Assembly: GCA_026936335.1 (NCBI GenBank)
Contig: JAPMXV010000051.1
Location: 124,001-188,000, forward strand
DNA length: 64,000 bases
DNA from: Mantamonas sphyraenae STR306
Taxonomy: Eukaryota; Protista; CRuMs
Direction: 5' to 3'
Below are positions 18,801-52,118 of the stretch, in pieces. Within the stretch, counting starts at the first letter, position 1; each line of letters starts with the position of its first letter. The position numbers and the translations under genes are program-made. Below the pieces are notes generated by a model that saw only the letters and a program-made list of their open reading frames with translations, ran no database searches and was not told the origin of the DNA.

Positions 18801-19510
18801 CCCAATGCCTCATAGAACGCCCCTGCTATCTTCACAGCTGCCCCATCCAGCACCTTCTCCCTGTATCCAATCACCACTGGCACATACTCACCCACCTTCT
18901 TTGCCATCTCCTCGCTCTCACACCCGTTCAGAAACACCAGCACGGGCCTTGCCTCCCTCACTGCATCCACAAGTGTCTGCCGCATCACATCCGCATCCTC
19001 AGCCTCCACGTACTCCCTTCCCATGTGTGCCGCAATATGCACCATGTGCTCCCCATACTCACGCACAAGCCGCACCACAGCGTCCTGACGCGTCTCCAGC
19101 CTCGCCAATGGCTCCAATGGCGACTCATGACACACCCCCTCAATCACCCGCTGCTCCTCCACGGACCCCAGTGTCCCATCCCCATCATTCCCCAGCACCA
19201 GCACCCTCACATCCCTCATTCCGCCCTCCTCCCACCAGTGATCACCAAACTTCCCCCTTCTTTTCGTGTTCTCATCCTTTCCCTGCCCATCCCTCCCTCC
19301 AGACGACGAAGATGACTCACCCGTATGCGTCCCACCCACCCTCCCCACTCCATCCACAACCACACCCTCTTCCTCACCCCCCTCCCGCCCTTCCCTCTCG
19401 CGGCCGCTTTCCCCTCTTGACATCTCCACCTCCCCCGCCCTTCCCTTCCCTCCCTCCTCCCTCTCTCTCCTCCCCCCTGCTTCCCCATCTGTACTCTCCC
19501 CTTTCTGCAT
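897..19510 (-). CDS. Giant NLR-like protein (~6,100-6,200 aa): CHAT protease + NB-ARC/STAND + ~117 TPR (kinesin-light-chain-like, 43 aa) + acidic Gly/Asp/Ser repeats + C-terminal hydrophobic helix; frameshifted in this assembly
   Basis: Stitched from ORFs 9092..19510, 16056..16370, 2293..14865 (TPR frame below ~9150) and 897..4160 (tail below ~2150). CHAT: MVHIAAH, LVFLNGCES, VPVVIGY, D-AA-IAGAFYEALGAGESVETAF. NB-ARC: GARGMGKT, WVMVMDGVE, VVVTTW, GGMALAVRQAAA, VHELVQ. Indels against the repeat consensus at ~16385 (-1), ~16062 (+1), ~9150 (-2) and several at ~2150-2295. Alternative start ATG at 19219 (MRDVRVLVLG) avoids overlap with the HLTF ORF. Confidence 0.85.
1107..1745 (-). repeat. Three near-identical tandem 213-bp (71-aa) coding repeats, D/G/S-rich, with degenerate flanking copies
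   Basis: The motif ctcctcgttgcgagcg recurs at 1181, 1394 and 1607 (period 213). Unit: DSDGGDPGDRPVSSDEESGDADSDNDGSGSDSDTYNVNSDIRSQRGGDGEGDDAQGGENPGAGRGGGGGDD. Confidence 0.95.
2135..17285 (-). repeat. Tandem array of ~117 copies of a 129-bp coding unit (43-aa TPR)
   Basis: Consensus MAEVYYAKGEYDRALELHEQALEIRRRVHGGDEHPEVAASIHN; ~15.15 kb / 129 bp = ~117 units; no spacers between units. Confidence 0.97.
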
Positions 19511-30904: not shown

Positions 30905-33900
30905 TCACTGCACATAGTTGCTCGGCACAAACCCCTCCACGCCATCCTTCCTCCTCACTCTCGTCCACCCTTCATCATCATCTTTGGCCTCCCAGGCCAC
31001 CAGTTCCACGACATCGCCTTCCTCCACCTGCACCGTGTCCTCCTCTGCCCCATCGTACGCGAACAGCACCGTCACCTCCTCCGCCGTCACAGCAGGAGCA
31101 GGAGCTGCTTCACTCACTTCAGCTTCTTCCGGTTTGCTCCTCCTCCCTCCTCCTCCTCCTCCCCCTCCTCCTCTCCTCACCTCTGCCGCCCACCCCTTCT
31201 TCTCTTGGCCAACCCGACTCAAACTGCGCACCATCCCACCGCTCCCCTCACTTTCCACATCCTCCTCCACCACACCCACATGCATCATCTTCTCCACCTT
31301 TCCTTCATCCATCTGGTCAATCCTCTCTGTACGCAAACTCTGCGGCTGGATCCTTGCACGCGTCCCTTCCCGCTCCGGCCGCATGGAAAAGTCCTTCAAC
31401 TCCTCATCCAACGAGTCCAAATCCTGCTCATACTCCACCTGCTCACGCGTGCACATGGCCAACCACATCCCTTGCGACGCCTCGTGCGCACGCCGTGTTG
31501 CAAGCAGAAGCCGCTCCACCCACAGCTGGTCGTTCGGCCCGGGTTCCGACGAAAACAGAAACGCAAGCACCTGGTACCGTACGGGCGAGTACACCATCAT
31601 GCGCACATTGTCCACGCGCATGTGCGTCGTCTTCATGTCCTTCTGAAACTCCACAAAGTCGTGCAAGGCAAACACCGCCTCCAGGATCTCCGACTTGTAC
31701 TCTCCAAAATGGATCACCGCCTTGTTCAGCTTCTTGATGTGTTCCGGTGTCAGGAACGACCATGCCACCTCTTCAATCTCCAGGTTGTCCATGCGCACCA
31801 CTCGGTCCCTTTCCGGAATCTTGCCCGCAGACTCCAGCGCCACCAGCCTCTCCTCACGCGTTTTCTCCCGCCTGAACCGCGATCGCGATCGGATCGACCG
31901 CTTCTCCTGCACCACAAACAGCAACACCACACCAAACATACTCAGCAGCAGGGCAATCACAAGGTTGGACATGATCTCCACCGTCGTCGATTCCAATCCC
32001 TCCGCAAGGAACGCCACACCCAGCACCATCACAAAAAAGTTCAGGATGAGCATGGACAGGGACATGACGTTGTGGTACCGATACCTGTACGGGCCCGCAT
32101 GCACTTGCAACAGACACGAGGCAAGCAACACCACCTGCCCGCTGATCCCCTGCACCACCCCGCTGCCCACAAAGAACACCTTGATGGCAATGAATCCTGC
32201 CTTGCGCAGCAGGTTCACAACCTCGTACCAGTACCACTCGGCACGGTAGCGGTCGTACAGCACACCAAACGTGTTGAGGTTCTCCTCGTTGGCCAGCTGG
32301 AACCGGTGCTTGTACAGCAGGACAAGGAACACCAACGGCGTGCCCACCACCCACAGCACAAGCGACGCAATGGCCCAGTACACCAGTTCCATGTGTTCTG
32401 GCGTCCAACATCCAATGTCCGGCGACGCAATCAGCACCAACTCGTCGCCCAGCTCGCTGCAAGCAAACATTTCCACCGTCTTGTTGGTCAGCATGATGTA
32501 CATCAACGAGGACATGAGCAGGTACGCATTCACCGTCGAGCGTGCCACCTCACGGTACTCCTGCGGCTCCGTAAACAGGGTGCTCACTGCATACCGCCAC
32601 TCGTCCAACTGCCGCAACACACGTGCACGCAGCTCGTGTGGCTTCACAGACGATGGGATGCGGCAAAACTCGGGATGATCCACACGGAAGCGTTGGCCGT
32701 ACCGCGACGCCCACCAGCTGCGCAGACATTCCAGCAGAAACAACACCAACATGACACCGGCCACAATGAATGGCATCAGCATAAACAGCACATACTTGGT
32801 CGAATACGTCACCCCGTTCACGTTGCACTCCGGGGCCGCAATGTCGATGTTCAGGTTGAAAATCGTCAGCAGCGAGAACCAAGCAAGCACCTCTTCCGGC
32901 CAGCGCAGCTGAAAGTCACCCATCAGTGCTGTCATCTGCAGCAGCGCAAGACCCATGGCCAGAGTGCCTGCACTGCGACGTACGCCCAGCTTGCGTACCA
33001 CCAGAAGGAAGCCCAGAAACAGGATGACGGAAAAGATCAGATTCAGCGACGAGTTGGCTGGGCACTCCACGCAAATGTTGTTCAACTTGTAGTAGCCCTG
33101 TTTGCATGTCGAACACAACCGACCCTGGTAGCCCTCTGCACACCCTTGTGTGCCTCCCAAACATGCCACAGACACGGTGCATCGCGCAAACGCAAAATCC
33201 TGACCCGAGTTCCAAAAGCCCGGCTTGGCCACAGGCGCCACCAGCTGGCCCTGGCACTCGGCCCCCTTGGGACACACCGTACATGCCTTGCCCGCATCCC
33301 CGTTGGGTTCGTAGAAGCCACTCTTGCAACCGCAATCCTCCAGGCGTCGGCTGTTGGTTGCGCTCAGCGTGTTCTCGGGACACGGTTGCACCGTCGCGCT
33401 CCCTGGGCCGCAGTACGTGTCCGACGGGCAGTTGATGCAAATGCCATCGCCTGCAGCTGCCTTGAATGTGCCTGCCTCACACGGCGAGCACTGCTGGCTC
33501 ACGTCACCGTCGGGCAGGAACGAACCTGCACGGCACGGCTCGAAAAAGTTGAACACGGCCGGCTCTGAAAACTGCTGGCCATTCAGCGCCACACGTACGT
33601 CCATCAAGCCGGAAGTGCGGTTAAACACAGGCAAGGTGGCCACCAGCTGGCCCGAGTTGATGTACAGGCCATCCACAAGTTCCCAGGCGCCGTGAAGCGT
33701 GGCGTTGAGCTTGATCTCGTTGGTGGGGAAAAACGGCCCACCAAACACAGCCACAATGGGCACACTGGTGGTGGGAGCACCTGCGGGCGTCAATGTGCTC
33801 ACTTCCACCTGAGCCAACAGGGTGAATGACACCGAGGAGAAGGGCACTCCGTTCACGTCAGCCACAGGGTTCCACGATCCGTCGTACTCACCCGACCAGT

Positions 33901-36638
33901 CTCGCCTGTTCAGCGACACCGTGACTGCCTGCACCGAAATCAATCCCACCAAAGGCGACGCACCCGCAGGCCCTACTGCAGGCGACTGCGTAAAGTCGGG
34001 TGACTCACACACAATGGCGTGTTGGGTGGCACTTGTGCCCGGTCCACTGCCCGTCCCCGCCGGTTGCCACACGCAGGACTTTGCGTACCGCACTCGCTTC
34101 TGAGCGTCACGGAAGCGCATGCGAGGTTCCACGTCTGTGGGCCACAGGCCGGGCGACAACACGGTGATCGAGGTGTTGCCCACGTTCAGGCCATTGGCAG
34201 GCACAAGTTGACGCCCTCCGGCCGTGGCCAGCGATTGGTCGTAAAACACAAAGGTGCCTGGCACACGCTGGTACTGTTGGCCATTGAAGGACACATCCAG
34301 CAGGTATGGACCCGTGCGTGTGTGGTTGACCCCCTGCGTCACATCGGGGGACACACAGGCAAACGCAGTGCTGCTCAACGCCATCACATCTGTGTTGGCG
34401 ACGCCGTGTACACCGGTGCCGTGGTTGGGTCGCCGTCACGCAACACCTTGGTGAAGCGACACCGATGGCCGTTACCCGTGGTCAGAAACGCACTGCCGCG
34501 CATCGTCACAGCCAGCCTCCCGTTCACCTGGACACTCGTCGGGTAGGGTCTGTCCAGCGTCGTGTTGTAGTAACTGTATGTGCGTCGGGTGTACCCTGCA
34601 AACACACCGAGATCGGCCACCAGCTCCACCACACGGACCCCGTTTGTGTCGTAACGAGGCATCGTGCACACCTTGCGTGTCGCCGTGCCACCCGTGCACA
34701 CAAACGACTCGGTTTGTCCACCCTGCGTCACGTAGAACGTCTGCGACGCCCCAAAGTTGGCACCGTCAATCGTCACCACCGTGGCCCCGTCTGCAGGGCC
34801 CGACACGGGCGACACACTGCTCACTGCCGCAAACGACACGTTGCACACGGTGAGACCACTCTGCACATTCGACGTCCCAAACGGACACCGGAAGCACGAC
34901 ACCACATCCCTCTCCCTGGAGTACTCTCCAGGGGGACACTGAGCACACGTGGACCCCAGAAACCCACCCTCCTCACCCGGTGCACACGACCCACTCATCA
35001 CTGTACGCCCCCCCCCCACCCCCCACCCCAATTCACCCGTAGTGTGTGTGTGTGTGTGTGTGTGTGTCAGCATTCCCGCTTTCCATCCCACACCAACAAC
35101 GCCACTTTCCCCCCCCCCTCCCACCCCACAAACTCACTCAACACGCGTCCACTTCCAGACGACGGACTATCATACCCCGTGGCTGCCATGAGAAAGACGC
35201 CTCGGTCGTCCACCTGCACCATGCGTGAGCCCATGTACTCATATCCGCCGTAGTACAAGGCATCGGTTTGACCCCAGGAACCGGGCACCATCACCTCCCC
35301 AGAGGGAAAGTACCTGCCCAACATCACCATGCGTCCACGACTGGAACTGTATGCAGGGCAACCCAACAACAACGTGTCGTTGGTATGCATGCTGACACCC
35401 ACCGAGTGTCCACACTGTGCGTTTGCCCCCGCCGTCGCCACCGCCACCTCTGCCGTCCCGTAGCTGTCTGCACCCACACGCAACACACTGACAGCAGCCC
35501 CAACGTTGTTGTTGTTGTTGTCCACACGATGGTAGGGACATCCCATGGCCACCAGCCATCCGTTGGTGGCCACACTCGACCCACACTGTCCGTTTGCCAC
35601 CCCACTCTCCAGCTTGTGGACCAAGCCCCATGCGTCTGTGCCCCCGTTGTGTCGATGGTAGATGTATGCCACTCCTTGTCCCTCTGTGCGTGCCCCCACC
35701 ACCAACTGGTCCCCTTTGAGCGCCAAGGCCCCGCCAAAACGGGCGTTGTTGGGATTGTTGGCTGTGGAGGACAACACCAACACGGGTTGGCTCAACACCA
35801 CCTGACGTGGAAGGGGCACCTGTGTTTCCACCGTCACATTCACACATGTGGTGTTGATGCTTGTGCTGTTGTTCACCCACATGCCCAGCGTGGCGTTGTA
35901 CTCGCTGTGGTGCACCGTCGTGTTGCTGCAATTGGCCACCACACTCAGCTTCGTTTCAAACTCCGTTGTCGCCGCCATTCCCGTCAGTGTTTCGTTGTAC
36001 GTCAGCGTGCGATACACATACACCCTTCCCTGTCGACTCGTCTCCTCCGGTGCTCCCACAAACACATGGTCGCTGTCCATGGCCAGGGCCGCCCCAAAGT
36101 ACCCGCCCACCACCCCACTGCTCAGCCGTTGTCGCACAGGCCATCCGTACTCACGCCTCTCCCAGTACCCTCCCGTGCCATTGACCACAAACTCGTTCAC
36201 GGTGTTGTTCGCCTGTGTCGTGTTGTACAGATACACCGCCCCGGCCTCCGTCGCACGCGTTGCCCCCACCCCAATCACCTGGCCCTCACCACCCACAGAC
36301 TCTCCAAAGAATTGGTTGCTGCTCACACGATCCTCTACAGGCTGTTCCGCCGTATCAATCCATTTCCAGTCTCCGGCCGTCTCCCCACTGCCTGTGCGCA
36401 CGTAAAACTCTGCCCGCCCTTGCTGCGGCATATCCCCATCCGCTCCAGGCGCCCCCACCACCATTCGGCTCCCGTCGCTCCACATGCTTCGTCCAAACTC
36501 TGCAAACGAACCCGTAAACGGATTGGGCAACGTTGCCACCGAAGCATTGACCCTGTCCACCGTCACCGTGCACACAACCAAGGCCACCACAAAAAGAAGC
36601 ACTTCCCGTGACGCAGCTGCTGTTTTCCGGTTCTTCAT
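30905..36638 (-). CDS. Large surface receptor, paralog 1: signal peptide, FG-GAP propeller, IPT/TIG, Cys-rich repeats, multipass TM domain, C-terminal SH3; exons 36638-35138 and 35000-30905, with a frameshift near 34387
   Basis: FG..VVGAP, FG..VFVGAP and FG..LVVGAR repeats; SPVSGPADGATVVTIDGANF (IPT); CxxCxxG repeats; FGVLYDRYRAEWYWYEVVNLLRK; SH3 VLFAYD...EGDVV...EGW...GFVPSNYV. Intron 35001-35137. Confidence 0.8.
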
Positions 36639-36763: not shown

Positions 36764-38658
36764 TCACGAGCTCAAATCCTTCAGGAACTGCTCCACCTCG
36801 GAATGGCCCTGACGCACGGCATCGTCCAAGGGCGTGCCACCCCAACGGTCCTTGGCCGACGGATCGGCACCCACCTTGGTCAGGTAGCGCACGGCGTCCA
36901 TCTGACCCTCACTTGCAGCCAGATGCAAGGCAGTGCGCATGTCGTAGTCGGCGTCGTTGACATTGACACCACGTGCGACCAGGTTGCGCAACTGGTCTGC
37001 ATCTCCCTCGGCCGCTGCCCACAGCAGGTCGATCACCGCACTGTGCTGCAGCTGTCGCTTGCGTCCACGCGGGTCCTTCTTCTTCTTCTCACCACCCTCC
37101 AGGATGTCGAAGCAGTGGAAGTTGAAGCGCGTGAGCAGCTCCCTGTAGAAGGCCACACCACGCACCGAGTTGCCCTGTGCGTCCAGACGGGGCGAAAACG
37201 TGGCAAACCCAGCCACGCCAGGCACCACCGCAAACACACAGCCTCCCACACCACTCTTGGCCGGAATGCCCATGCGGAAAGCCCACTGACCACTGTAGTC
37301 GTACATACCACACGACAGCATCAGCGACAGGCACATCTTCACCGTCTCGGCCTTGAAAATGCGGTCGCCCGTCAACGGGTTCACGCCTGCGTTGGCCAGC
37401 GTCGCCGCCATAATCGCCATCTTTTCGCATGTCACCTCCTGCGAGCACACCTGGAAGTACGTCTCCAGCGTCTGGATCATGTCGCATCCGTCCGGGAACG
37501 CCCCACTCTCCTTCATCATGTAGCCCAGGCAAAAGTTGCGGTCCGCCGTCTCGCGCTCGCTCAGGTACGTCGAGTTGCTGAAGCCAATCTTCTTGCCTCC
37601 AAACAGACGCGTCCAGATCTTGGTCATCTCCGAGAAGCGGTCGCCGCTGTTCAGGTCACGGAACAGCATCGACACGGACATGATCGCACCGGCGTTGATC
37701 ATCGGGTTGTGCGGCAGACCACGCGGGTTCAGCACCATCGAGTTGAATGCCACACCAGACGGCTCTGTGCCAATGTGCCTCTCCACCTCATCGGCACCCT
37801 CCTGCTCCAGCGCAATGCAGTAGGAAATGGGCTTGGAGCACGACTGCACACAAAAGTCCACGTTGTAGTCCCCATGGTGGAACTGCTGACCAGACACCGT
37901 GCACACAGACACGCCAAACTGCTCCGGATCCACCTCGGCCAGTTGCGGGATCTGTACACACGCACACACACAGCCACAGCCACTCCGAGTGTGAGCGTAA
38001 CGTCCACGCAATTCCCTTCCGACGCTTTTGCTTGACACGCCCCCTCACCCCACCCACCCACAACCCTTGCACTTACGTAGTCTGCGTTGGCGCCATCCTT
38101 GATGGGCTCCACCTCGTCAAACACCTCCACCACTTCCTCGCAGAACGTCTCGAAATCGGGGATGGTCAGGAACCCACACAGGGCCTGGGCAATCAGGATC
38201 TGTCCCTCCAGCAGCTCCACAAACTGGTCTTCCGTCAGCTGCGTCTTGTGGTCGTAATCCTTGGTGCTCTTGCGGAATTCCTCCAAACGCGGGTCTGAGT
38301 CCAGCAGGCCACATTTGCGAACCATGATGGCCAGGTCATAGAAATTCAGCGTCTCCTCGCCTTGCGCAATGGCCGAGAAGATGGCCTGTGTGCACGTGAG
38401 CGCCTTGGCGTCAGTGTTCCCCTCATTCTTGCCATGCTTGCGGCCTCGCGTGTCCACCCGTGGAAGGTTGGCTGGGGAAAAACGTGGAACCTTGCGAGAA
38501 AAACAAAGGCCCTCGCTTAAAATGCAACGCCGGCTCCTTTTGTCTCGCGGGTCCCCTCCGCACGTGCCACACCACCCCACACTCACCTTAGCCGACAGGT
38601 CGGGCAGATCTTCCTGCGCGACAACAGATTTGGGGTTGGACAATCCGACAGTGGTCAT
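36764..38658 (-). CDS. GLS: Glutaminase, animal kidney-type architecture (EF-hand-like N-domain, catalytic domain, C-terminal ankyrins); exons 38658-38587, 38385-38077, 37951-36764
   Basis: GANADY|IPQLA across intron 37952-38076; QSCSKP (catalytic SxxK), EPSGVAFN, NPMINAGAI, SCGMYDYSGQWAF, PAKSGVGG, SPRLDAQGNSVRG; ankyrins DYDMRTALHLAASEG and DRWGGTPLDDA. Confidence 0.95.
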
Positions 38659-38804
38659 TTCAGACGGGTAGCTACTTTTCTTTCGTGTGAGAGGGTTTGA
38701 GCTGGCGCCGCATCCGCGCAGTATTTTTGTGACAACTGAGTCACACGCGCGGCGCCCACGCAGCCACACGCACACATCCGTCCACACACTCTCCTTGACA
38801 GGAC
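38659..38804. promoter_or_regulatory. Putative bidirectional promoter between the glutaminase and ammonium-transporter genes
   Basis: 146 bp between divergent ATGs; inferred from geometry only, no specific motif identified. Confidence 0.5.
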
Positions 38805-41152
38805 ATGTCGGATCCCTCGTGTATCAACAATGGCGACACCGCCTGGATGCTCACTGCCATCGGGTTGGTCATGCTCCAGACCCCCGGCATGGGTCTGACC
38901 CAGGCGGGCCTCATCCGCCGCAAAAACTCCCTCTCCATGCTCATGCAGGTCATCATGGGCCTCATGATTGGCTCTATCCTCTGGTGGGCCATCGGTTACA
39001 CCCTCACCTTTGGTCCCGATCAAGGTGTACGTTGTGTCCCTTCCCCCCCTCTTTGGCCTCGTATTCTGCGCAAGGCTCTTTGCGAACATGCACCGCCCTC
39101 CGCACGACCCTTCGCAGCCCTCGTACGCCCTCCCATGCCGTTTCCGGCCCCCGCCGTCCATCTGCCATCCACTGCATGCCATCGACCCACCCCATTCCAT
39201 GGGCCTTCCACGCACCCTCCCTCTGCAAGTGGTCGCCTGCGCTCCCGAGCCCGCCCACAGCTTCCAATTTTTTTCCCCGCGCTCGCATTTCCTGCGACCC
39301 GCTCGTCCCATGGCCCTCCCCTTCACCCGGGCATCACCACTGACCCAAACCAACGGCCTACGTGTCCCGTACGCCTGCCCCCCTGTGTTATACAGGGCTT
39401 CATTGGCGGTTTTGAGAACGCATTCTACATTGGCGTGCCCATCCACGGGTGCATTGAGGGCCAGTCGATCCCTGGCGTTGTGTTTGCCACCTTCCAGATG
39501 ATGTTTGGTCTGATGGTGCCTGTGATCATCACGGGTGCCTGGGCCGAACGTTTCCCCTTTGTGGCATCGTTGTGGTTCTTCTTCTTGTGGCCCATCTTTG
39601 TGTACTACCCGCTTGCCCACTGGGTGTGGGGCGGTGGCTGGCTGGGCTCCTTGGGTGTCATCGACTTTGCAGGTGGCATCACCATCCACACCAACGCCGG
39701 TGTGGCCTCTCTGGTGGTGGCCAAGATGCTGCACAAGCGCAAGCACTTCTTTGAGATCATGGATTCCCACCACAACATCCCGCTCACCGTCGTCGGTGGC
39801 GCCATGATCTGGTTTGGCTGGTATGGCTTCAATGGAGCCAGTGGCCTCATTTCCGACGGTCTTGCCGGTCAGGCCCTGCTCAACACCCACATGGGTGCAT
39901 GCACCGCAGGTATGGTGTGGGTGCTCATGGCCTACCTGAACGACCATCACTTCCACCTCACCACCGCCCTCAACGGTGCCTTTGCCGGCCTGGCTGCCGT
40001 CACCCCTGGATCGGGGTACATGGAGGCATGGGCGGCTGTGGTGACTGCGGCCCTGGCTGCAGTGGGCTCCTACTACACCTCGGACTACCTCAAGGGCCGT
40101 GTGCATCTGGACGACGTGTTGGACGTCAGTTCGCTGCAGGGCACGGCTGGCATGATTGGGTCCATCTGTGCAGGACTGTTTGCCACGCAGACGGTGAACG
40201 CCGCGGGTCCCAACGGCGCCTTCTACGGCAACGGCGCCCTGCTGGGCTACCAGATTGTGGGTGTGCTGATGGCCATTGTGTGGTCTGGCTTCTGGACCTA
40301 CGTGGTCATGAAGGTCATCGAGAAGATGGTGGGCATCCATGTCAGCTCGGAGCTGCAGGAGAAGGGTCTGGACTTTGCCGAGATTGGCGAGAGTGGCTAT
40401 GCCCTGGAGGACATGGAGGCCGGTGTGGCTGTCATCAACGAAGCTGCGGCCTCGGGCAACCTGGCCAAGCTCAAGGATTTGCGTGATGCAGGTGCCATCA
40501 TTGACACCAGCGATTACGATGGCCGTTCGCCCCTGCATCTGGCTGCCAGCCAGGGTCAGTCGAGGTGGTCAAGTACCTGTTGGATGTGGTGCACGTGGAC
40601 GCCAACCGCACCGATCGCTGGGGTGGCACTGCCCTGGCAGACGCCAAGCGATACAACCACCAGACCATTGTCGAGCTCCTGGCACCCGTCACCACCGTCA
40701 CCGAACAGACCGAACGTGTCTCTGTCACCGAAGTCTGCGAGGCTGCCTACCGTGGCGACCTGGAACTGCTGCGTGAGTACAAGAGCCGCGGTGCCAACCT
40801 GCAGCTGGGCGACTACGACGGACGCACCCCGTTGCACTTGGCCGCCGCCCAGGGTCACATGGACATTGTCACCTTCCTTGTGGAGGATGCCCATGCCAAC
40901 CCGTCCCGTACCGATCGCTGGGGTGGCACTCCCCTCAAGGATGCCACCATGTATTCCCACCAGGACGTGGTGGACTACCTGCAGCCCCTCACCATCCTCA
41001 CCGAGGACGCTGTCCCGGGCAACGATGACATCCTTGACCTCGACGACCATCACCACGTGCCCGACGGTGCCCTCCATCCCGTTGCCATCCATCATCGCGA
41101 GAAGCGAGGCAAGCTCACTGCCTTTGGTGCTGACGATGATGTCGTGGAGTGA
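38805..41152 (+). CDS. Amt/Mep ammonium transporter fused to two C-terminal glutaminase-like ankyrin modules; exons 38805-39026 and 39396-41152; 1-nt frameshift at ~40559
   Basis: GDTAWML, FQMMF, ITGAWAER, AHWVWGGGWL, DFAGGITIH, WFGWYGFNGAS, NGAFAGLAAVTPG, LDDVLDV. The ankyrin ORF 40565..41152 joins if one G is restored (ggt cag [g]tc gag gtg = GQVEVVKYL). Confidence 0.9.
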
Positions 41153-43698: not shown

Positions 43699-46600
43699 TC
43701 ATTCCAACTTTTTGCAGTACGACGTGGGCACGTAGCCCTGCTTGCCATCCGAAGGTCGCTTGCACAGAGTCCACTGGGGTGTGGCCTGGAGGACGTCCAG
43801 GATCTCTCCCGCGCTGGCGTCCATGTCTGTCTCTCCCACGTGGGTATAGTTGGCAACCACCTGCACTTGGGCCTGTTTCCTTCCCACCCCGCTTGCACTG
43901 GGTGCTGCCTGCGACACACTGCGTGCCAGTGTGTTGTGTTGCACCGTGCTCTTGGTCCTCGGTTGCCTTTGATGCACGGTGCTCATTGTACGCACTGCCC
44001 CACTGTTGCTGCTGCTGCTACTGCTGCTACTGTTCCCTCCATCCACATCCATCGTCTCGCCTCCATCCCCGTCTGCCCTGCTGTTGTCCTCATTGGCCAA
44101 CGACTGCATCTCAATGGCCTCGCCGCCTCGCGACATGCGCGCCTGCTCCACAGCCGCCTGCAACACCTTGGGTCGCGTGGGCACCGCAGGCTTGCTCTGC
44201 CTGTCTCCAGCAGCAGCAGCAGCACCACCAGCCGGGGCCATGCTGACACGCTTGTCCTGCTGCTGCTGTGGTGCCGCAGCTGCACCCCCGTGTCGCTGGG
44301 ATTGCGATTGCTGAACATCGTTGGGCACGAGGGTGTCCATGTTCTGGCCGGTGAGACGGTTGCCCATGCGTGTGATGAGACTCTTGTCTTCGGTGACAAA
44401 GGTGGGATCCAACATACGCGCCAGGATCTCGTCCATCTTGGCCACCGTGGGCAACACAAAGTCGCCTGTGCTGCCTTTGATGTCCTGTGCATCCTGCAAC
44501 ATCTTCATAGCCTTGAGCAGCCTACGCACCCAAATCTTGTGTGCCTCGTTCACCTCGGGGGCAGCCAGGAAGTTGACCGCCTCGAAACGAACCGTCTCCA
44601 GCATAAACTCCTCCACGAGGGTCGAATCCAACTGCCGCGCAGGCGACGATCGGAATTCGCTCATAAAGTAGCGCAGAGCCACCAGAGACATGCGCACCTC
44701 CTTCTTGAAGGCCTGCATCTTGTCGAGCAGACTGAGAAAGGTGGGGATGTACTCGGGGGCAAACACGTCCCAGGCGAGCTCCTCGATTTGGAACGACTCC
44801 ATGTCCACCAGCGAGTCACCCGTGCTGTCCATCTGGCGCCTGCGCTTGAACAGTTCGTACTCGCGTTGGAAAAAGTCGTGGGAGCGCACGTTGAAGCGTT
44901 CGTGGAGACCGGCAAGGACAATCAGTGCGGCGGCACCCAAGATCAGGGTGAGCACAAGACCCGTGAGGGTGTCCACACTCTGCACGTCCAGATCCTCGGC
45001 CAGGAAGGACATGCCCAGCACAAGGACAAGGAAGTTGGTCAGGTTGAGGGTGTTGCTCACCGTGTTGAGATGGGCAAACTTGTATGGCACGGCATTCACC
45101 TGCACCAGGGCACCCAAGAGCAGAATCACCTGACCCGTCATGCCCTGCACCACACCCGTGTGGAGAAACACCTTGCCTGTGATGAACCCGGTGGCCATGG
45201 CCTTTTCCCACAGGCCAAACCAAGTCCACCGGGGCAGGAAGCGATCGTACACGGTGCCCATCAACTCGCGTGTGCTCTCCTTGTCCATGCGATTGCGAAA
45301 CAGATAGAGCAGCAGGGCTTGGAGCAGAGGCACACCCAGGGTGTAGCCCAGCAGGCCTGCCAATGCCATGGGTTGGTACTCTGCATGGCGTCCGGTGCCA
45401 CACTCAAACTGCGGGGCGACACTGAGCACGGTGCGTGTGGCATCCACACTGATGCAGGAAAACATCTGCAGCACACGGTCGGTGATGGGCACGTAGAGGA
45501 AGGAGAGCACAAGCATGTACGCGTTGAAGGCGTGTCGGCATGCGGTTGTCATGTTGGATGGCAGGAAGAAGAGGGTGCTGAATGTGTACCGCACCCACGA
45601 CAGCACATACACCACATGCTCACGCACTGTGTATCGCTTTCCCTCCTGGGGCGTGGCTGTGAATCCGCTGTACTTGTTGCGGAATCGTTCGCCCGTCTCC
45701 TGCACAATCAGGGTGCGGATGGTGTCCAGCACAAGAAGCGCCACAAACAAAGCCAACACGTAAAGTGGCACTTCCAGTGTGACCTGCAGCTTGTCAAACA
45801 CGTCAAATCGCTGCTGCAGACACTCCACACCGGCCAGATCCACGTTGGCGTTTACCAGAGACAAGCCCGCAAGCACACGCAACACAGAGTCGGGCCACGA
45901 AAACAGAAAGTCTGCAAACAGAGTCGTCACTGTGAGTGAGTGAGTGAGTGAGTGAGTGAGTGATTGAGTGTGCGTGTGAGTGAGTGTGTGAGTGTGCGTA
46001 TGAGAAATTGTGTGACACGCGCTCTCCCTCCCCTCGTTCCCAAACTCACACTGCAGGGCTTGGATGCCCAGAAGGATGACACTGGTGCTGCGTTTGATGG
46101 CTGCGTAACGCATGACAAAGAGCAGCAGAAGGAAGCAGAGGAGGGCAACGGCCAGGGAGCCCGAATAGCTGTTGGAACAGGCGTCGCACAGGTTGCCCAG
46201 CTGATAATGGGTGTCCAAACACGTGCGACACAGGAAGCCCGAATAGCCTGGGGCACAACTGACGGAGCCTCCCTGGCACGCGGCGGCCACGGGACAGGTG
46301 AGGAAGATAAAGTCGCTGCCGCTGTTCCAGAAGCCCGGCTTGGCCAGGGGCAGGGCGGTGGAGCCCGAACAAAAGGCGCCGCGGGGACACTCTGTGCAGG
46401 GACGACCCGCACGTTGGTTGGGTTCGTAGTAGCCTGCACGACAGCGACACTGGTCCAGGCGTGAGGAGCGGGCCACGGAAAAGGTGTTGGTGGGACAGTC
46501 GTTGCGTTTGGAGGCGCCGCGTTCGCAGTAGGTGTCCACGGGACAGATGGTGCATGTTCCAGAGCCCTTTTTGTCCTTAAAGGTGCCCTCTTCGCAGGGG

Positions 46601-49461
46601 ATGCAGGGTTCGCTGGGCGACGGCGCGTAGTTGCCCACGTCGCAGGGGCGAAACATGTTGAATTCCACCGCGTTGGTGTACTGCTGGTTGTTCAGCGTAA
46701 TCGACACGTTGGCCACGCCCGAATCGTTAAAGTTGTGCATCACAGTGCGGATTTCGCCCGAGGTGCGATACGTGCCCTCGGCGTAGTACACCACCCCGTT
46801 CAACTCCTGCCGCACACGGATCAACTCCGCTCCCGTGTTGACATAACTGGTGCCCAGCAACGCCACCGTGGGTCTCGAGTCGCTGAGTGCCCCCGGGGGA
46901 TCGGGCCGCGTGATGCGATACTCGCCAAAGGCAATGAGCAGCAGGTTGTCCAGGTGAGAGTTGAACTGGGTCGCATCGGCATTGGGACTCACCTCGACCT
47001 GCAACGGATGGATAAAGGCCACCAAAGGCAATCCCAACATGGGCAGGGTGCGACAATGCAGGGTGGCATTCACGCCCCATTGTGCGTCGATGCACTCGTG
47101 GTACGTGCCCGTGTTGTCACGCAAGCGCACACGCGGCGATTCCCTGGTGCGACGCAACCCGGGCGCAGACACAACGATGCTGGTGTTGCCTGTCACCAAC
47201 GCATACGGAGGATACACGGTGCCCTGGCCCATGGCATGGTTGTACACCACCCATGGGATGGCGTTGCTGTACTGTTGCCCGTTCAGACTCAAGGCCACCT
47301 GCGTGTCACCCAAGGACACGTTGCGTGCCACCAACGACGGCGTGGCACACTGCACACGTGTGGCACTCACAAACGTGGCAACTGCGTCTGCCCCCGCCGT
47401 GGCGTCGCCCAGGCGACACCTGAGCAAGCCGCTGTCGATGGCACGCGTCACCGCAAATGTCGTCGTCGTCGCTCCGCCAATGGGACCCGATGTGGGGGCA
47501 CTGCTCAGCAAGGTGGTGTTGTAAAACGTGTACACAGGCGGAGTGTACCCAGCCTTGTGTGCACCGCCGGGGGTGGCGGAAAAGTTGTAGGCTGCAATTT
47601 GGCCCTGAGCAAAGGTGGGCAAGGCAGGCGTGGTGCACACCATGCGTGTGGCAGACGTCACACCACAGGCAAGGGTGAGTTGTGCAGGGAGTCCCGGAAC
47701 ATCGGTGGTCATGGTCACCGTTTGGGTGGGTCCCACAAAGTTGACACCCGTGGCCACCACCTCGGTGGCACCTGTGTTGGGACCCAGAGGGGGCGAGATG
47801 GCGGTCACTGCGGCAAACACGTCGGGGCAATCCGTGCGATCCACACCGACGGTGGTGCGTCCCAAGGGACACTGGAAGCACAGGGTGCGATCGTTGCCAC
47901 GTGGTTTGTACTTGCCATCGGGACATGCCATGCACTCGGAGGAGGTGACGTCAAACGGGAATGCCACCTGCTGTTGGGGCGGACACACACCACGGTAGGC
48001 ACGCAGTTGACCCCGTCGCGAGGGACCCCCTTCCAGCTCACCCACAAACAGATCCGCCTTGGCAGGAGGGGACACAGTGTGCAACAGACTGCCAAATTGC
48101 AGGTTGGAACTCACGGGGCTGCGCAGCTGGTACTGCAGCCCCCAATGGGTGCTGTTGTCCAGGATGCCAAGCGGTTCGTCGTAGTGGTACGCCCACACCT
48201 TGCCATTGCCCGTGCCACAGTTGCGTGAGCCCGTGGCACCCACCATGGCACTCAGATCGTTGGGGTCCACATACACGGACGCCCCAAAGTACTGGTAATC
48301 GCTGCCGCAAAACTCGTCCGGCGAATTGATCACCTTTTCCACATCCCACGTCTCACTCACGTTGCTGATCACACGCCGACGCAGGATGTGAACAGAACCA
48401 ATGTCCCTCTCGTCACCGTCTGTGTAGGGTGCCCCCACCACCATCACCTCGGTGCCCAGGGCCACCGCGTGGCCGAAACGCGCTCCCGACTGCCACGCCG
48501 AGGCACTAAACGCAGCCGCCAGACCCCAACTGTCGACCACTCCGCCCTGGTTGCGGTTGAACACATACACCGCACCCACTGCGGACGATGTGGCGCCACC
48601 CACGTGTGGTGCACCCGGTGCGCCGACCACAAGGACGTCCTGGGTCATGGCAAGGGCATATCCAAAATCCATGTTGTTGTTCAACACCACCGGCACCTGC
48701 AACAACACATGGGCCGCGTACGCATGGGTGCCATTGTTCACCTTGCGAAACACACTCACTGTGCCTGCCCGCTGTGTGGGCGAGTCGCCCGTGTTGTAGG
48801 CGTCCACAGAGGCGACGGCAAGGAAGCCCGAGTTGGAGTCGCCGCTGGTGGTGGCCATCCGGTAGCCGTATCTGTCGCCTCCCCTGCGGCCCTGGATGCT
48901 TTCCAGGGTGTGAATGTCAAACCAGTGGGAGTAGGGTGTGGTGGCGTTGGTTTGATTGGTGGCATGGGTGATGTTGTACACCAGCACCCGGCCCTCGTTG
49001 CTGTTGGAATTGGGGGCACCCACCAGCACATACGGAGGGTCCACCGCCACGCTCCACCCAAACGCCCCCAGCGAATCGTGCGTCGAACGGGCGTCGTTCA
49101 CATAGTCCCACTGCAGGGTGGTGTGATTGAATCGGTACAGGTACGCTGCACCCCTGTAGGTCAACCCTTGCGGACGAAGGTCGTCGTTGCTGGCGCCCAC
49201 CACCAAATAGTCCCCCTGTGTGCTGATCGACACGCCATAGTCCCCAGATCCAGTGGGATACGGCGATTGGAGTTCCAATTGGGACAGGCCACCGTTGCTG
49301 GACACCTCTGCCCCCTGTGTGGGCTGTACCAGCACTGCGAAAACAAGAAGCAGGAACAGCGGAGGCAGCGGCTGCCAGCATCGCTCACCTTTCGCCCCCT
49401 TTGGCTTCCTTTGTCCACGCATGGGTGTGACCCCGTGTGTAAAGAGACACTGCAAGGACAT
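43699..49461 (-). CDS. Large surface receptor, paralog 2: signal peptide, FG-GAP propeller, Cys-rich, IPT/TIG repeats, multipass TM domain, C-terminal SH3; intron 45930-46049
   Basis: LFLLLVFAVLV signal; YG..LVVGAS, FGWSV..LVGAP, FGYAL..VVGAP, FGHAV..VVGAP; ISPPLGPNTGATEV; shared with paralog 1: LNGQQ, AKPGFWNSG.DF, GY.G.LC.TC; SH3 VVANY...QW...GYVPTSY. Removing the (CACT)n in-frame intron gives ALQLTTLFADF, matching LLQMTALMGDF in paralog 1. Start could be 49461 or 49422. Confidence 0.82.
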   Translation of the reverse strand: MSLQCLFTHGVTPMRGQRKPKGAKGERCWQPLPPLFLLLVFAVLVQPTQGAEVSSNGGLSQLELQSPYPTGSGDYGVSISTQGDYLVVGASNDDLRPQGLTYRGAAYLYRFNHTTLQWDYVNDARSTHDSLGAFGWSVAVDPPYVLVGAPNSNSNEGRVLVYNITHATNQTNATTPYSHWFDIHTLESIQGRRGGDRYGYRMATTSGDSNSGFLAVASVDAYNTGDSPTQRAGTVSVFRKVNNGTHAYAAHVLLQVPVVLNNNMDFGYALAMTQDVLVVGAPGAPHVGGATSSAVGAVYVFNRNQGGVVDSWGLAAAFSASAWQSGARFGHAVALGTEVMVVGAPYTDGDERDIGSVHILRRRVISNVSETWDVEKVINSPDEFCGSDYQYFGASVYVDPNDLSAMVGATGSRNCGTGNGKVWAYHYDEPLGILDNSTHWGLQYQLRSPVSSNLQFGSLLHTVSPPAKADLFVGELEGGPSRRGQLRAYRGVCPPQQQVAFPFDVTSSECMACPDGKYKPRGNDRTLCFQCPLGRTTVGVDRTDCPDVFAAVTAISPPLGPNTGATEVVATGVNFVGPTQTVTMTTDVPGLPAQLTLACGVTSATRMVCTTPALPTFAQGQIAAYNFSATPGGAHKAGYTPPVYTFYNTTLLSSAPTSGPIGGATTTTFAVTRAIDSGLLRCRLGDATAGADAVATFVSATRVQCATPSLVARNVSLGDTQVALSLNGQQYSNAIPWVVYNHAMGQGTVYPPYALVTGNTSIVVSAPGLRRTRESPRVRLRDNTGTYHECIDAQWGVNATLHCRTLPMLGLPLVAFIHPLQVEVSPNADATQFNSHLDNLLLIAFGEYRITRPDPPGALSDSRPTVALLGTSYVNTGAELIRVRQELNGVVYYAEGTYRTSGEIRTVMHNFNDSGVANVSITLNNQQYTNAVEFNMFRPCDVGNYAPSPSEPCIPCEEGTFKDKKGSGTCTICPVDTYCERGASKRNDCPTNTFSVARSSRLDQCRCRAGYYEPNQRAGRPCTECPRGAFCSGSTALPLAKPGFWNSGSDFIFLTCPVAAACQGGSVSCAPGYSGFLCRTCLDTHYQLGNLCDACSNSYSGSLAVALLCFLLLLFVMRYAAIKRSTSVILLGIQALQCEFGNEGRESACHTISHTHTHTLTHTHTQSLTHSLTHSLTVTTLFADFLFSWPDSVLRVLAGLSLVNANVDLAGVECLQQRFDVFDKLQVTLEVPLYVLALFVALLVLDTIRTLIVQETGERFRNKYSGFTATPQEGKRYTVREHVVYVLSWVRYTFSTLFFLPSNMTTACRHAFNAYMLVLSFLYVPITDRVLQMFSCISVDATRTVLSVAPQFECGTGRHAEYQPMALAGLLGYTLGVPLLQALLLYLFRNRMDKESTRELMGTVYDRFLPRWTWFGLWEKAMATGFITGKVFLHTGVVQGMTGQVILLLGALVQVNAVPYKFAHLNTVSNTLNLTNFLVLVLGMSFLAEDLDVQSVDTLTGLVLTLILGAAALIVLAGLHERFNVRSHDFFQREYELFKRRRQMDSTGDSLVDMESFQIEELAWDVFAPEYIPTFLSLLDKMQAFKKEVRMSLVALRYFMSEFRSSPARQLDSTLVEEFMLETVRFEAVNFLAAPEVNEAHKIWVRRLLKAMKMLQDAQDIKGSTGDFVLPTVAKMDEILARMLDPTFVTEDKSLITRMGNRLTGQNMDTLVPNDVQQSQSQRHGGAAAAPQQQQDKRVSMAPAGGAAAAAGDRQSKPAVPTRPKVLQAAVEQARMSRGGEAIEMQSLANEDNSRADGDGGETMDVDGGNSSSSSSSSNSGAVRTMSTVHQRQPRTKSTVQHNTLARSVSQAAPSASGVGRKQAQVQVVANYTHVGETDMDASAGEILDVLQATPQWTLCKRPSDGKQGYVPTSYCKKLE
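45931..45996. repeat. (TGAG)n/(TG)n microsatellite in the intron of receptor paralog 2
   Basis: Direct reading; directly abuts the minus-strand acceptor AG. Confidence 0.85.
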
Positions 49462-49547
49462 TTGAGTTTGTGTTGTGTGTGTTGCGTGTGGGAAATGATT
49501 GCCTTTGTCGTCGCAACCTTTCCTCCTCCTCCTCCCCCCCTCCCACC

Positions 49548-52118
49548 ATGGGCAACTGCGGCTCGCGTAGCAGACGCGTACGGCCGCAGCCTGCCTTGAG
49601 TGCGGCGTCGACATCGTCGAACTCTGCGGTTGAGGAGGACCCCGTGCGGGGGCGGTTGTTCAGTCAGCCGTCGAGCACCGGCGGCGACGAGAACCATCCC
49701 ATCCCCGAAATCACCAGTCCCACCCGCTTGGCTGCCACATTGTCCGCAACCAAGTCGGTGGAGGAGCGCAGGCGATCGTGGGGCCGTGCTGCTGCCGCCG
49801 GTCAGATGATGATGGCCGCTGCGGCTGAACACGACACATCGCCCGGCAAACACAGACGACGAAGCAGCGACCTACGTCGACATTCCGTCAGCATGGGGTC
49901 CGAAAAACGAAGCCCCGGGTCGCCTTCCAGTGGGGGTGGGTCACGCAAGGCGTCACTGGCACGCAACACAAGCTATTCGTCACCCAGCAACCAGAGTGTA
50001 AACCTGCAGCGGGACGAAAGCAAGCGCAGTTCGCCCGAGCCCCAGGTCCGTTTGCAGACCCCGTCGGACGAAGGGACCGACCTTTTCCCGGCCTCTGCCG
50101 ACGATGACGATGGCATGTTCTTCCTCATGGCCAAGAAGAGCAAGAGGAGGGATTCTGTGAGCTCCGTTGCCCTCAGCACCGCCTCCTTCTCCCCCACAGA
50201 ACGCGATTCCCCGGGTCTCGACGGCCGTCGCCGCGGTTCCATCTCCAACGATCGCACCAGCTCTCGCCGTCTCCGCGCAAAGGTCGCCGGCCGCCGTTCC
50301 TCTCTCGTCGGATCACTGGGTAAGTGTGCACACAGTTGGCCCACCACCCCCCCTCGTCCCATTCCACACCCTTTCCCCTTCCTCGATGCGTGAGAGTCTC
50401 GAAGCCATTTCTCCGCAACGGCTATTCCTTCGGCCCAGGCCGATTTCCTTCCAAAAACGCCTTGTGCTGACACGGACACGCTGCGGTTGGACAGTGATTG
50501 GCCAGGAATACCTTGATTTCCATGCCTCGCATGCGTTGCGCATCCCCACCACAGTCACGACCCACGTAAGCACGGGCAAGGACGACTTTGGTAAGGGCAC
50601 CAGCGTTTTTTCAGACACCGGATTTCACACAACACAAACGCTGCCAAACCACACGTTGTCACCCAATTTGCTCACCAAGAGAGAGCGACACACACACACA
50701 CATACACTCACACACACGCACACACACGTTTTGCACACAGGGTACAAGTTTGTCAACCAGTACAACCTTGTCAGCACGCTTGGTCGTGGCTCCTACGGCA
50801 AGGTCAAACTGGCCGTCAACATCGAAAACGACACTCCTTACGTGCGTTTTGGCCATTTTGCACGTTTCCCAACGCCCCCTTCCCCGCCTGCCCCCAACCC
50901 GCACAGTGTCACTCACACACCTCAACCCACCGAAATGCATGTGTGTGTGTGTGTGTGTTGCTGCTCCTCGCACAGGCCATCAAAATCTGTACAAAGTCAA
51001 AGCTGAAGCGCAAGCGTTTCGCAGGAGCCACGAACGCGTTGGCGGACGTGCGTCGTGAAATCCTGCTGCTGAAACGGCTGGAACACCCGCGTGTGGTGAA
51101 GCTGTTTGAGGTGATTGACTCGTCGTTCCATGATCGCCTGTATATGATCATGGAACTGTGCGACCGCAGCGTGTTTACGTCAAAGAACATGACGCCCCTG
51201 CCCGTGCCCACCATCCGTGCACACATGCGCGATCTGGTGCTGGGCATCGAGTACCTCCATTCCCAAGGGATCATTCACAGGGACATCAAACCGGAGAATC
51301 TGCTGGTGACCCCGTCCGGCGTGCTCAAGGTGTCCGACTTTGGCGTCTCTGAGATTGTGCCCACCCAGGACACGCTCATCAAAAAGACCGCCGGCACACC
51401 GGCCTTCCTTGCACCCGAGTGTTGCTCGGGTGAACCCTTCCTGGGCCCGCCCGTGGATGTGTGGGCCATGGGGGTCACCCTGTATGCCTTTACCTTTGGC
51501 CGTGTGCCCTTTCGTGCACAGGCCCTCATGGACATGTACGAAAAGATCAAGAGCGCAGAGATCACCTTTCCCTTTGACGTGGACCACTGGCTGGCCGATC
51601 TGCTCATGGGCATGCTCGAGCGCGACCCTGCCAAGCGATTGACCCTGCCTGAGATTCGCGAGCACCCGTTTGTCACCGAGAATGGCATGTATCCCATGCC
51701 CGACCAGGACATGAGCACCAACGAGTGGCCCGGCCTGGAGAACGACCAGGACGCAGACGTGTACCGAAGCCCCGAGGTCAAGGATGCCTTTGGCTACCAT
51801 CATGACCGTGGTGACGACGCACTGCGCCAGGAGTACCTCAACGCTCCGGGAGGCGCCGGCGAACGCAGCGCCTCTTCCCTCTCTCACTTTTCCGAATCCT
51901 CCTTTGAGGAAACAAGCATGATCGAGGGCCGCGGCTCCACCGTGGTCTTTCGCGCCATGGACGACGACGTCGAACACGAACACCTCATGCTGGACAGCGA
52001 CAGCGGTGCCCATGCATCGCTCACAAACACTCCGTCGGGTTCGGCCCACGAAACCCTCTCCTCCATGTTTCCCTCCATTGAAAAGCTGCCTGTCCTCAAC
52101 ACAACCGAGGTGGATTGA
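49548..52118 (+). CDS. CAMKK/GRIK/SAK1-family kinase with putative N-acylation motif; exons 49548-50319, 50495-50590, 50741-50841, 50976-52118
   Basis: MGNCGS N-terminus; TTHVSTGKDDFGYKFVNQY, LGRGSYGKVKLA, AIK, HRDIKPEN, DFG, TAGTPAFLAPEC, DVWAMGVTLY. Three GT-AG introns join in frame. Confidence 0.85.

Follow-up and report, generated by a model that had tools for sequence, protein, structure and literature searches.

Background

Glutaminase produces glutamate and ammonium, and bacterial ammonium transporters (Amts) are gated by PII/GlnK proteins that eukaryotes outside plants, to our knowledge, do not have; how Amts are controlled in these eukaryotes is largely open. Here we analyze a gene pair in which an enzyme and a transporter of these two kinds stand head-to-head. 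It lies in a stretch of 64,000 nucleotides of contig JAPMXV010000051.1 (hereafter the window) from Mantamonas sphyraenae STR306, a bacterivorous flagellate of the CRuMs group. The glutaminase ends in one ankyrin module and the Amt in two modules of the same kind.

Changes in the pore histidine pair of Amt/Mep transporters alter both selectivity and mechanism, and the natural variation that has been reported concerns the first histidine, which is Glu in fungal Mep1/Mep3 (PMC9040831). Fusions of Amts with cytosolic domains are also described: Ks-Amt5 and Sd-Amt1 act as ammonium receptors, and fused Amts outside the receptor cluster exist, their function being open (PMC11152129). In human glutaminases, an ankyrin bundle is common to each dimer and restrains activity (PMC10912226).

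The Mantamonas Amt, as judged from its sequence, belongs to an old eukaryotic subfamily that has Gln in place of the second pore histidine and arrays of ankyrin modules at a predicted cytosolic C-terminus. By its domain content, the neighboring gene encodes a kidney-type glutaminase composed of an EF-hand_14 domain, a catalytic domain and a single ankyrin module. Both genes are spliced and expressed, and the adjacency of the two families recurs in other lineages. On balance, we lean towards reading the two genes as a co-regulated pair, of which one member produces ammonium and the other conducts or senses it.

Results and discussion

An Amt-ankyrin subfamily with a substituted pore histidine

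Searches were made exon by exon, with no joined spliced model, and local analyses bridged a frame break in the Amt tail with XX. The best solved-structure match of the window Amt is A. fulgidus Amt-1 (1e-61). In an alignment to the solved Amt-1 and Mep2, the window Amt keeps the first pore histidine (H168) and has Gln in the column of the second, where the twin-histidine pattern breaks; the equivalents of F107, F215, W148, S219 and D160 are conserved in this protein and in nearly all members of its clade. At the position of H318, all 76 ankyrin-bearing Amts have Gln, as do 16 clade members that lack the ankyrins or are truncated, and 133 of 133 archaeal-type relatives have His; all sequences were counted with redundancy and without de-replication.

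A search for Amt-ankyrin fusions in other organisms, which the original prediction had proposed, was productive. The full-length fusion query returned over 70 clusters of Amt-ankyrin proteins, 650-1070 residues in length, with hosts that include Balamuthia mandrillaris, the diatom Entomoneis paludosa, the choanoflagellates Diaphanoeca grandis and Savillea parva, and many metagenome contigs. The closest relatives of the window Amt are ankyrin-less sequences of the amoebae Clydonella and Paramoeba, followed by many Amt-ankyrin proteins. In a tree of the Amt core, obtained by a quick search with the Shimodaira-Hasegawa-like approximate likelihood ratio test (SH-aLRT) as its sole support measure, the Amt-ankyrins form one clade (100% SH-aLRT), inside which ankyrin-less members are nested, adjoining Mantamonas. 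This nesting suggests that the fusion is ancestral to the clade and that the tail was later lost in some lineages. Members of the family can be aligned over the junction that follows the conserved C-terminal region of the Amt. Of 44 de-replicated proteins, 31 have the usual layout of four modules, grouped as two closely spaced pairs; a single pair is present in Mantamonas. That the Amt core and the first module share one exon and one frame establishes the fusion at the level of DNA.

Outside the eukaryotes, the nearest relatives are Amts of ammonia-oxidizing Nitrososphaeria (about 45% identity). The eukaryotic His-Gln clade branches beside them, and this placement may point to an origin in archaea or to an ancient gene transfer. 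The Mantamonas genome has five further Amt genes, four in tandem at C60:99295-106206 and one at C59:179271-180062; they are 32-34% identical to the window Amt, in alignments that stop ahead of any ankyrin region. A full-text literature search found no paper describing an Amt-ankyrin subfamily, and literature searches returned nothing that joins ammonium transporter, ankyrin and glutaminase and, among the titles and abstracts listed, none on a fused Amt-ankyrin. The family is large and apparently undescribed.

Gene structure and expression of the pair

The original prediction had described divergent start codons 146 bp apart and matching ankyrin modules on both tails, and these descriptions agree with our analysis, including the strands and the motifs (Table 1); the modules are 41-48% identical and score 102-127 bits with a hidden Markov model (HMM) of the module. 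Its exon layout of the glutaminase was correct for the intron next to the last exon, whereas the first exon, drawn as one piece, contains a second intron.

The pair is covered by three runs of one study (X1, X2 and X3). Run X3 is labelled 'DNA?' but behaves as RNA, with both glutaminase introns and the Amt intron skipped at canonical boundaries. Expression is not ranked by depth because the runs were read as assembled contigs. In run X3 the glutaminase transcript contig extends to at least 38685; the Amt contig starts at 38784, so that the two ends are at most 98 nt apart.

In the window sequence, the Amt frame breaks at 40558/40559, inside module 1. Each of the three runs has an additional base at this site (G in X1 and X2, A in X3), and with this base the reading frame is again uninterrupted. 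As the base is present in three of three runs, the break reflects an assembly error or a rare allele. The assembly was built from PacBio reads and polished with Racon and Pilon (PMC10492846), and the break is sufficiently explained by an indel left at a site with a G/A polymorphism. Three other candidates, namely a pseudogene, a tiny intron and a programmed frameshift, are ruled out by the absence of the break from every run. Gene prediction from the present assembly will split or truncate the Amt at the missing base.

The window glutaminase has an intact S-x-x-K motif in its PF04960 domain, aligned with that of the linked glutaminase of a metagenomic locus described below (L048), together with the N-terminal EF-hand_14 and the C-terminal Ank families that characterize GLS. 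Its N-terminus ahead of the EF-hand exon is, after splicing, about 24 residues long and net acidic; on reading of the sequence it holds no obvious mitochondrial presequence, and the enzyme is probably cytosolic. Two further glutaminase-family genes of the same genome, at C45:77717-80980 and C45:165211-168438, keep the ankyrin module. In alignment, the position of S-x-x-K reads Q-x-x-L and A-x-x-T in these paralogs, which are probably pseudoenzymes and possibly act as regulators or module partners. Since both have lost the motif, the Amt-linked gene is the only catalytically intact glutaminase found among the three in the genome.

Table 1. Features of the glutaminase-Amt pair in the window and loci elsewhere with the same two gene families side by side
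Feature	Position or arrangement	Strand	Evidence and remarks
Glutaminase gene	ATG at 38658, stop 36764-36766	minus	three coding exons
Glutaminase first coding exon	38586..38658	minus	ATG at 38658; spliced contig, translation
Glutaminase intron	38385-38585, 201 nt	minus	skipped in run X3 contig (joint 38384/38586)
Glutaminase middle exon	38077..38384	minus	EF-hand_14 (PF17959) 7e-07, Pfam
Glutaminase intron	37952-38076	minus	skipped in run X3 contig (joint 37951/38077)
Glutaminase last exon	36767..37951	minus	catalytic domain, then linker and one ankyrin module; 37951 boundary from spliced contig
Glutaminase catalytic domain	about 37109-37951	minus	Pfam Glutaminase PF04960 1e-105, profile positions 7-286 of 286
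Glutaminase ankyrin module	36767..37039	minus	Pfam Ank_2/Ank_4/Ank; module HMM 126.5 bits
Divergent promoter region	38659..38804		146 nt separating the two ATGs
Amt gene	ATG at 38805, stop 41150-41152	plus	two exons
Amt exon 1	38805..39026	plus	first transmembrane helices; Pfam Ammonium_transp 1e-14, profile positions 1-60
Amt intron	39027-39395	plus	GT..AG; skipped in run X3 contig
Amt exon 2	39396..41149	plus	rest of core (to about 40400), conserved C-terminal region, two ankyrin modules, acidic His-rich tail; Ammonium_transp (PF00909) 3e-80, profile positions 79-399, then Ank families, 2e-20 on last piece
Amt pore Gln codon	40137..40139	plus	at second pore histidine (E. coli AmtB H318)
Amt ankyrin module 1	40422..40696	plus	module HMM 102.1 bits, read with XX at frame break
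Amt ankyrin module 2	40721..40996	plus	module HMM 118.6 bits
L038	glutaminase and Amt-ankyrin head-to-head		ENA metagenome contig, GC 0.34
L048 and L052	glutaminase and Amt-ankyrin head-to-head		one lineage, GCA_977009595.1 and MDTB01122429.1, GC 0.33-0.35
L053	glutaminase and Amt-ankyrin tail-to-tail		GC 0.42

The pair is flanked by two paralogous giant receptor-like genes, at 30905-36638 and 43699-49614, both on the minus strand. Both have FG-GAP repeats, ephrin-receptor-like Cys-rich repeats and a C-terminal SH3 domain; IPT/TIG was seen in the 43699-49614 gene only, and a TRP-like multi-pass membrane region in the 30905-36638 gene. Elsewhere in the window, positions 16001-20000 have a GC skew of -0.38 and -0.64, compared with about -0.2 over the remainder.

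Recurrence of the pairing

Linkage of a glutaminase gene to an Amt-ankyrin gene, the other object of the search proposed by the original prediction, was found in three further contexts (L038, L048/L052 and L053; Table 1). The head-to-head cases belong to an AT-rich lineage of marine eukaryotes; the Amt core of L048/L052 is 90% identical to that of L038, and the linked Amts of L038, L048/L052 and L053 fall in a well-supported subclade other than the Mantamonas one. Their glutaminases group with the window glutaminase in a quick tree (SH-aLRT 94). The adjacency therefore spans two Amt subclades, with very different base composition (GC 0.60 in Mantamonas versus 0.33-0.35 at L038 and L048/L052). 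At L053, the glutaminase (3871-7751, minus strand) has an N-terminal cyclic nucleotide monophosphate (cNMP)-binding domain, two catalytic domains in one frame and one ankyrin module. The related-locus survey used a junction alignment of seven sequences, whose pattern Q[IVM]GEQAYD has no match to the Mantamonas junction, and it is biased towards the subclade of L048-like proteins. With three glutaminase-family genes among the 9,416 genes of Mantamonas (PMC10492846), we estimate the chance of adjacency at ~6e-4 per genome. The pairing of the two genes is unlikely to be due to chance.

A related arrangement is seen at locus L071, where an ankyrin-less Amt (P0004) from the subclade closest to Mantamonas lies head-to-head with an 856-residue protein (7233-9803, minus strand) that has three glutaminase-type modules (100-113 bits) and an armadillo-like region. 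By its module content, this arrangement looks like a split version of the Amt-ankyrin fusion. At L039, the head-to-head neighbor of the Amt is a generic ankyrin array. A protein search with P0353 returned generic ankyrin clusters only, all below 0.9. The occurrence of the modules as fusions in most genomes and on a divergent neighbor in others argues for a functional association of Amt with module-bearing proteins.

Relationships of the ankyrin modules

The three window modules have a common build of cap helices, one full repeat and a cap-like repeat, with the motifs DYDxR and DRWG. Identity of the glutaminase tail to the halves of Amt module 1 is 43% and 41%, and to Amt module 2 it is 45%; between the two Amt modules it is 48%. 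In an alignment of foreign modules, the D, Y, D and R of DYDxR and the D and R of DRWG are invariant or nearly invariant columns. Designed consensus ankyrin proteins are ~48% identical to the glutaminase tail by our own count on the alignment, and for this reason much of the mirroring between the two tails can be ascribed to the ankyrin consensus together with DYDxR and DRWG. In the search of the module against solved structures, the top matches were swamped by such multi-repeat designed proteins.

Within the Mantamonas genome, this type of module appears nearly confined to the three glutaminase-family genes and the window Amt. Apart from itself, Amt module 2 is matched best by the tail of the neighboring glutaminase (76 bits) and next by the tails of the two contig-45 paralogs; other ankyrin proteins of the genome score below 40 bits. 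A profile made of foreign modules only gives 125.6 bits for the glutaminase tail (its best match), 109 for Amt module 2, and 93 and 93 for the tails of the two paralogs, the remaining genome matches being one at 85 bits on contig 3 and the rest at 69 or less. The 85-bit module is part of a long ankyrin array at C3:344000-346300 (minus strand) and is the only match above 69 bits outside the glutaminases and the Amt.

In other genomes, modules 50-63% identical to the glutaminase tail are present in ankyrin-only arrays, in bacterial and eukaryotic glutaminases, in cNMP-binding/HCN-like channel proteins, asparaginase/lysophospholipases and protein kinases, and in a U-box protein. Many of these foreign modules equal or beat the neighboring glutaminase tail as matches to the Amt modules. 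A module tree, built on 92 columns and weakly resolved, shows strong clustering by host label. For the most part, the Amt ankyrins are grouped with one another rather than with unrelated proteins, the outcome that the original prediction had named as adverse; channels, asparaginases and kinases do belong to the wider module family. The two Mantamonas Amt modules are sisters (support 97/93), and the glutaminase tail is placed in a clade of 24 modules, 22 of which come from glutaminases (93/88). We attribute the likeness of the modules to both proteins carrying a widespread and putatively self-associating module type.

Structure models of the modules

When the glutaminase module was modelled in complex with Amt module 2, the score was 0.65, compared with 0.00 for the best of three controls; this mark is reached by 51 of 78 solved complexes and by 2 of 108 mismatched pairs. 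At least 80% of the contacts are common to the model runs, and the partner has a predicted local distance difference test (pLDDT) value of 87 or more. The interface in the model has two-fold symmetry; each chain contributes its first helix, its inner helix, DYDxR and the RW of DRWG, with D40, Y41, D42, R44, R74 and W75 of chain 1 and their equivalents in chain 2. The prediction supports, rather than shows, ankyrin-ankyrin binding.

The AlphaFold model of a two-module Amt tail (P0003) has a pLDDT of 93.9 and a predicted template modelling (pTM) score of 0.77. Its best structural matches are the ankyrin domains of SKOR, GORK and AKT1, with query-normalized TM-scores of 0.68-0.71 and a root mean square deviation of about 4 A over about 200 columns; at the sequence level, the tail matches these plant channels as two stretches. 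The tight spacing of modules 1-2 and 3-4 had led us to consider face-to-face pairing of the tandem modules. We regard this arrangement as less likely, the modelled tail resembling a continuous plant-channel domain instead.

Interpretation of the gene pair

In the reading that we mildly favor, divergent transcription from a region of at most 146 bp would co-produce the glutaminase and the Amt. The enzyme would make glutamate and ammonium, probably in the cytosol, and the coupling would consist of an ammonium source being made together with its membrane conduit or sensor. As Mantamonas eats bacteria, export of waste ammonium is the likely direction of transport. The original prediction of a eukaryotic two-gene nitrogen module gains from the short shared promoter region, the expression of both genes and the recurrence of their linkage; its further element, the docking of the enzyme on the transporter, receives weak support from modelling. 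Several observations weigh against the co-regulated pair. Most Amt-ankyrin loci with usable flanks have no nearby glutaminase (at least ten contexts; none was found in the available flanks of Balamuthia L043, L044, L045-47, L050, L039, L040, L062, L049 and L072). The convergent orientation at L053 means that a shared promoter is not the conserved feature. The glutaminase tree comes from a quick search and includes no named eukaryotic sequences, and the distance of L038 and L048 from Mantamonas is judged from 45-53% protein identity, GC of 0.33-0.35 versus 0.60 and placement in the Amt tree. The evidence of expression comes from a single RNA-like run, in the form of assembled contigs.

Two alternatives assign a larger role to the ankyrin tail, and each is tenable only as a tentative proposal. 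According to one of them, the glutaminase module pairs physically with a module of the Amt tail via the DYDxR and DRW surfaces, and this tether serves channelling or mutual regulation. The complex model, in which the symmetric interface falls exactly on the two family motifs, points in this direction, as do the near restriction of the module type to these proteins in the genome, the recurrence of the linkage, and the Rosetta-stone pattern formed by P0004 and its three-module head-to-head neighbor. However, the solved human glutaminase dimer shares an ankyrin bundle (PMC10912226), so the model may pass through likeness only; and since modules of this family probably associate with one another, the pass does not tell which member binds which. 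The glutaminase module can also be satisfied by homodimerizing, a tandem pair of such modules is predicted to form one continuous domain similar to that of plant K+ channels, the trimeric Amt and the tetrameric glutaminase differ in symmetry, the module tree has no sign of co-evolution, and glutaminase is missing beside most Amt-ankyrin genes. The other proposal, to which we give similarly limited credence, takes the His-Gln Amt as mainly an ammonium sensor (transceptor) or a regulated channel, the ankyrins of which recruit kinases or cytoskeleton, with the glutaminase as a regulon neighbor; it overlaps both with docking and with the co-regulated pair. It draws on the ammonium receptors Ks-Amt5 and Sd-Amt1 as precedents (PMC11152129), on the alteration throughout the clade of a histidine pair reported to be important for selectivity and mechanism (PMC9040831), on the resemblance of the tandem module to the regulatory ankyrin domains of SKOR, GORK and AKT1, and on neighbors elsewhere that are ankyrin proteins rather than glutaminase. 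Against it, ankyrin repeats are not an enzymatic transducer and all other transport residues are kept. A receptor of the N1/N2 type is rejected, as the signature Q-x6-E-x15-N-x2-D-F/T ... T-x2-S/T (PMC11152129) is absent from the window Amt and exon 1 holds no Glu.

The remaining explanations dispense with a special relation between the two proteins or derive it from their proximity. That the two genes have no functional link, being adjacent by accident in a compact genome and alike in their ankyrins through generic consensus, seems improbable to us. The genome is indeed gene-dense, with 9,416 genes in 25 Mb (PMC10492846), the module approaches designed repeat proteins in sequence and is found on many unrelated proteins, and most Amt-ankyrin loci are unlinked to glutaminase. 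Yet the two families are adjacent in at least two Amt subclades with very different base compositions, and in Mantamonas the module type is restricted to these proteins. The suggestion of the original prediction that the Amt may have captured its ankyrins from the neighboring gene, taken here as recent domain transfer or as gene conversion that refreshed them, finds very little favor. On the 92 columns, a clade uniting the three Mantamonas modules is not rejected by an approximately unbiased (AU) test (p 0.68), the sister relationship of the Amt modules implies that the tail was remodelled in this lineage, and the neighboring tail is the best non-self match in the genome. However, the fusion appears ancestral to the Amt clade, across which the junction and the first module align; the careful tree, by our arithmetic ~6 log-likelihood units better than the tree constrained to unite the three modules, keeps the glutaminase tail among glutaminase modules; the Amt modules are matched equally well or better by foreign modules; and the identity is only about 41-47%. 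Judging from these sequence comparisons, the transporter is unlikely to have copied the module of its neighbor recently.

Implications

We tentatively propose that His-Gln Amts could use their putatively self-associating modules as a docking platform, for the active glutaminase in Mantamonas and at L038/L048 and for the ankyrin-armadillo protein at L071, although we consider this somewhat doubtful. If true, the platform would represent a eukaryotic, PII-independent counterpart of AmtB-GlnK, in which glutaminolysis is coupled directly to the release or sensing of ammonium through a pore whose proton relay is altered. The subfamily is directly testable by its two constant features, the ankyrin arrays and the pore Gln. 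Current models of selectivity and proton-coupled transport center on the histidine pair, a mechanism on which a whole natural His-Gln clade provides a ready-made experiment; the recurrent pairing with glutaminase or with a module-only protein supplies a concrete candidate partner. Should the pairing hold, it would offer a simple example of a metabolic enzyme wired to the membrane conduit of its product. Should docking fail, it will still be useful to have annotated, in a deep-branching protist, an atypical Amt together with one active glutaminase and two pseudo-glutaminases.

Comparison with known systems

Among described glutaminases, human GLS/KGA and GLS2 have the same layout of EF-hand_14, Glutaminase and a single ankyrin module as the window enzyme, which differs in its short, acidic N-terminus, in the head-to-head position of its gene with an Amt, and in the presence of two probable pseudoenzyme paralogs. 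The window Amt shares PF00909, the Phe gate, W148, D160, H168 and S219 with the canonical Amt/Mep proteins (AmtB, Amt-1, Mep2). In contrast to these, its clade has the second His replaced by Gln and a C-terminus extended by two to four ankyrin modules, and no gene for a PII/GlnK partner adjoins the window Amt.

The position of the tail has several parallels. In Ks-Amt5 (histidine kinase) and Sd-Amt1 (diguanylate cyclase), a cytosolic module follows the conserved C-terminal region, as in the window Amt; those receptors are bacterial and carry an enzyme, whereas the clade described here is eukaryotic and fuses ankyrins, which bind proteins. The plant Shaker-type K+ channels AKT1, SKOR and GORK also have a C-terminal cytosolic ankyrin domain on a membrane transport protein, although they represent another transport family and have no link to glutaminase. 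The Rh glycoproteins in the erythrocyte ankyrin-1 complex provide a reported case (bioRxiv 10.1101/2022.02.10.479914) of an Amt/Mep/Rh superfamily member with ankyrin repeats on its cytosolic side; there the repeats belong to a separate scaffold protein, and in the window Amt they belong to the transporter chain itself.

The gene arrangement is most similar to amtB-glnK of bacteria and archaea, in which the transporter gene is likewise kept beside the gene of a cytosolic protein of nitrogen metabolism and a complex of the two products is proposed. The Mantamonas pair differs from it in that the partner is an enzyme and not a PII signal protein, the genes are divergent rather than arranged in an operon, and the linkage is limited to certain lineages.

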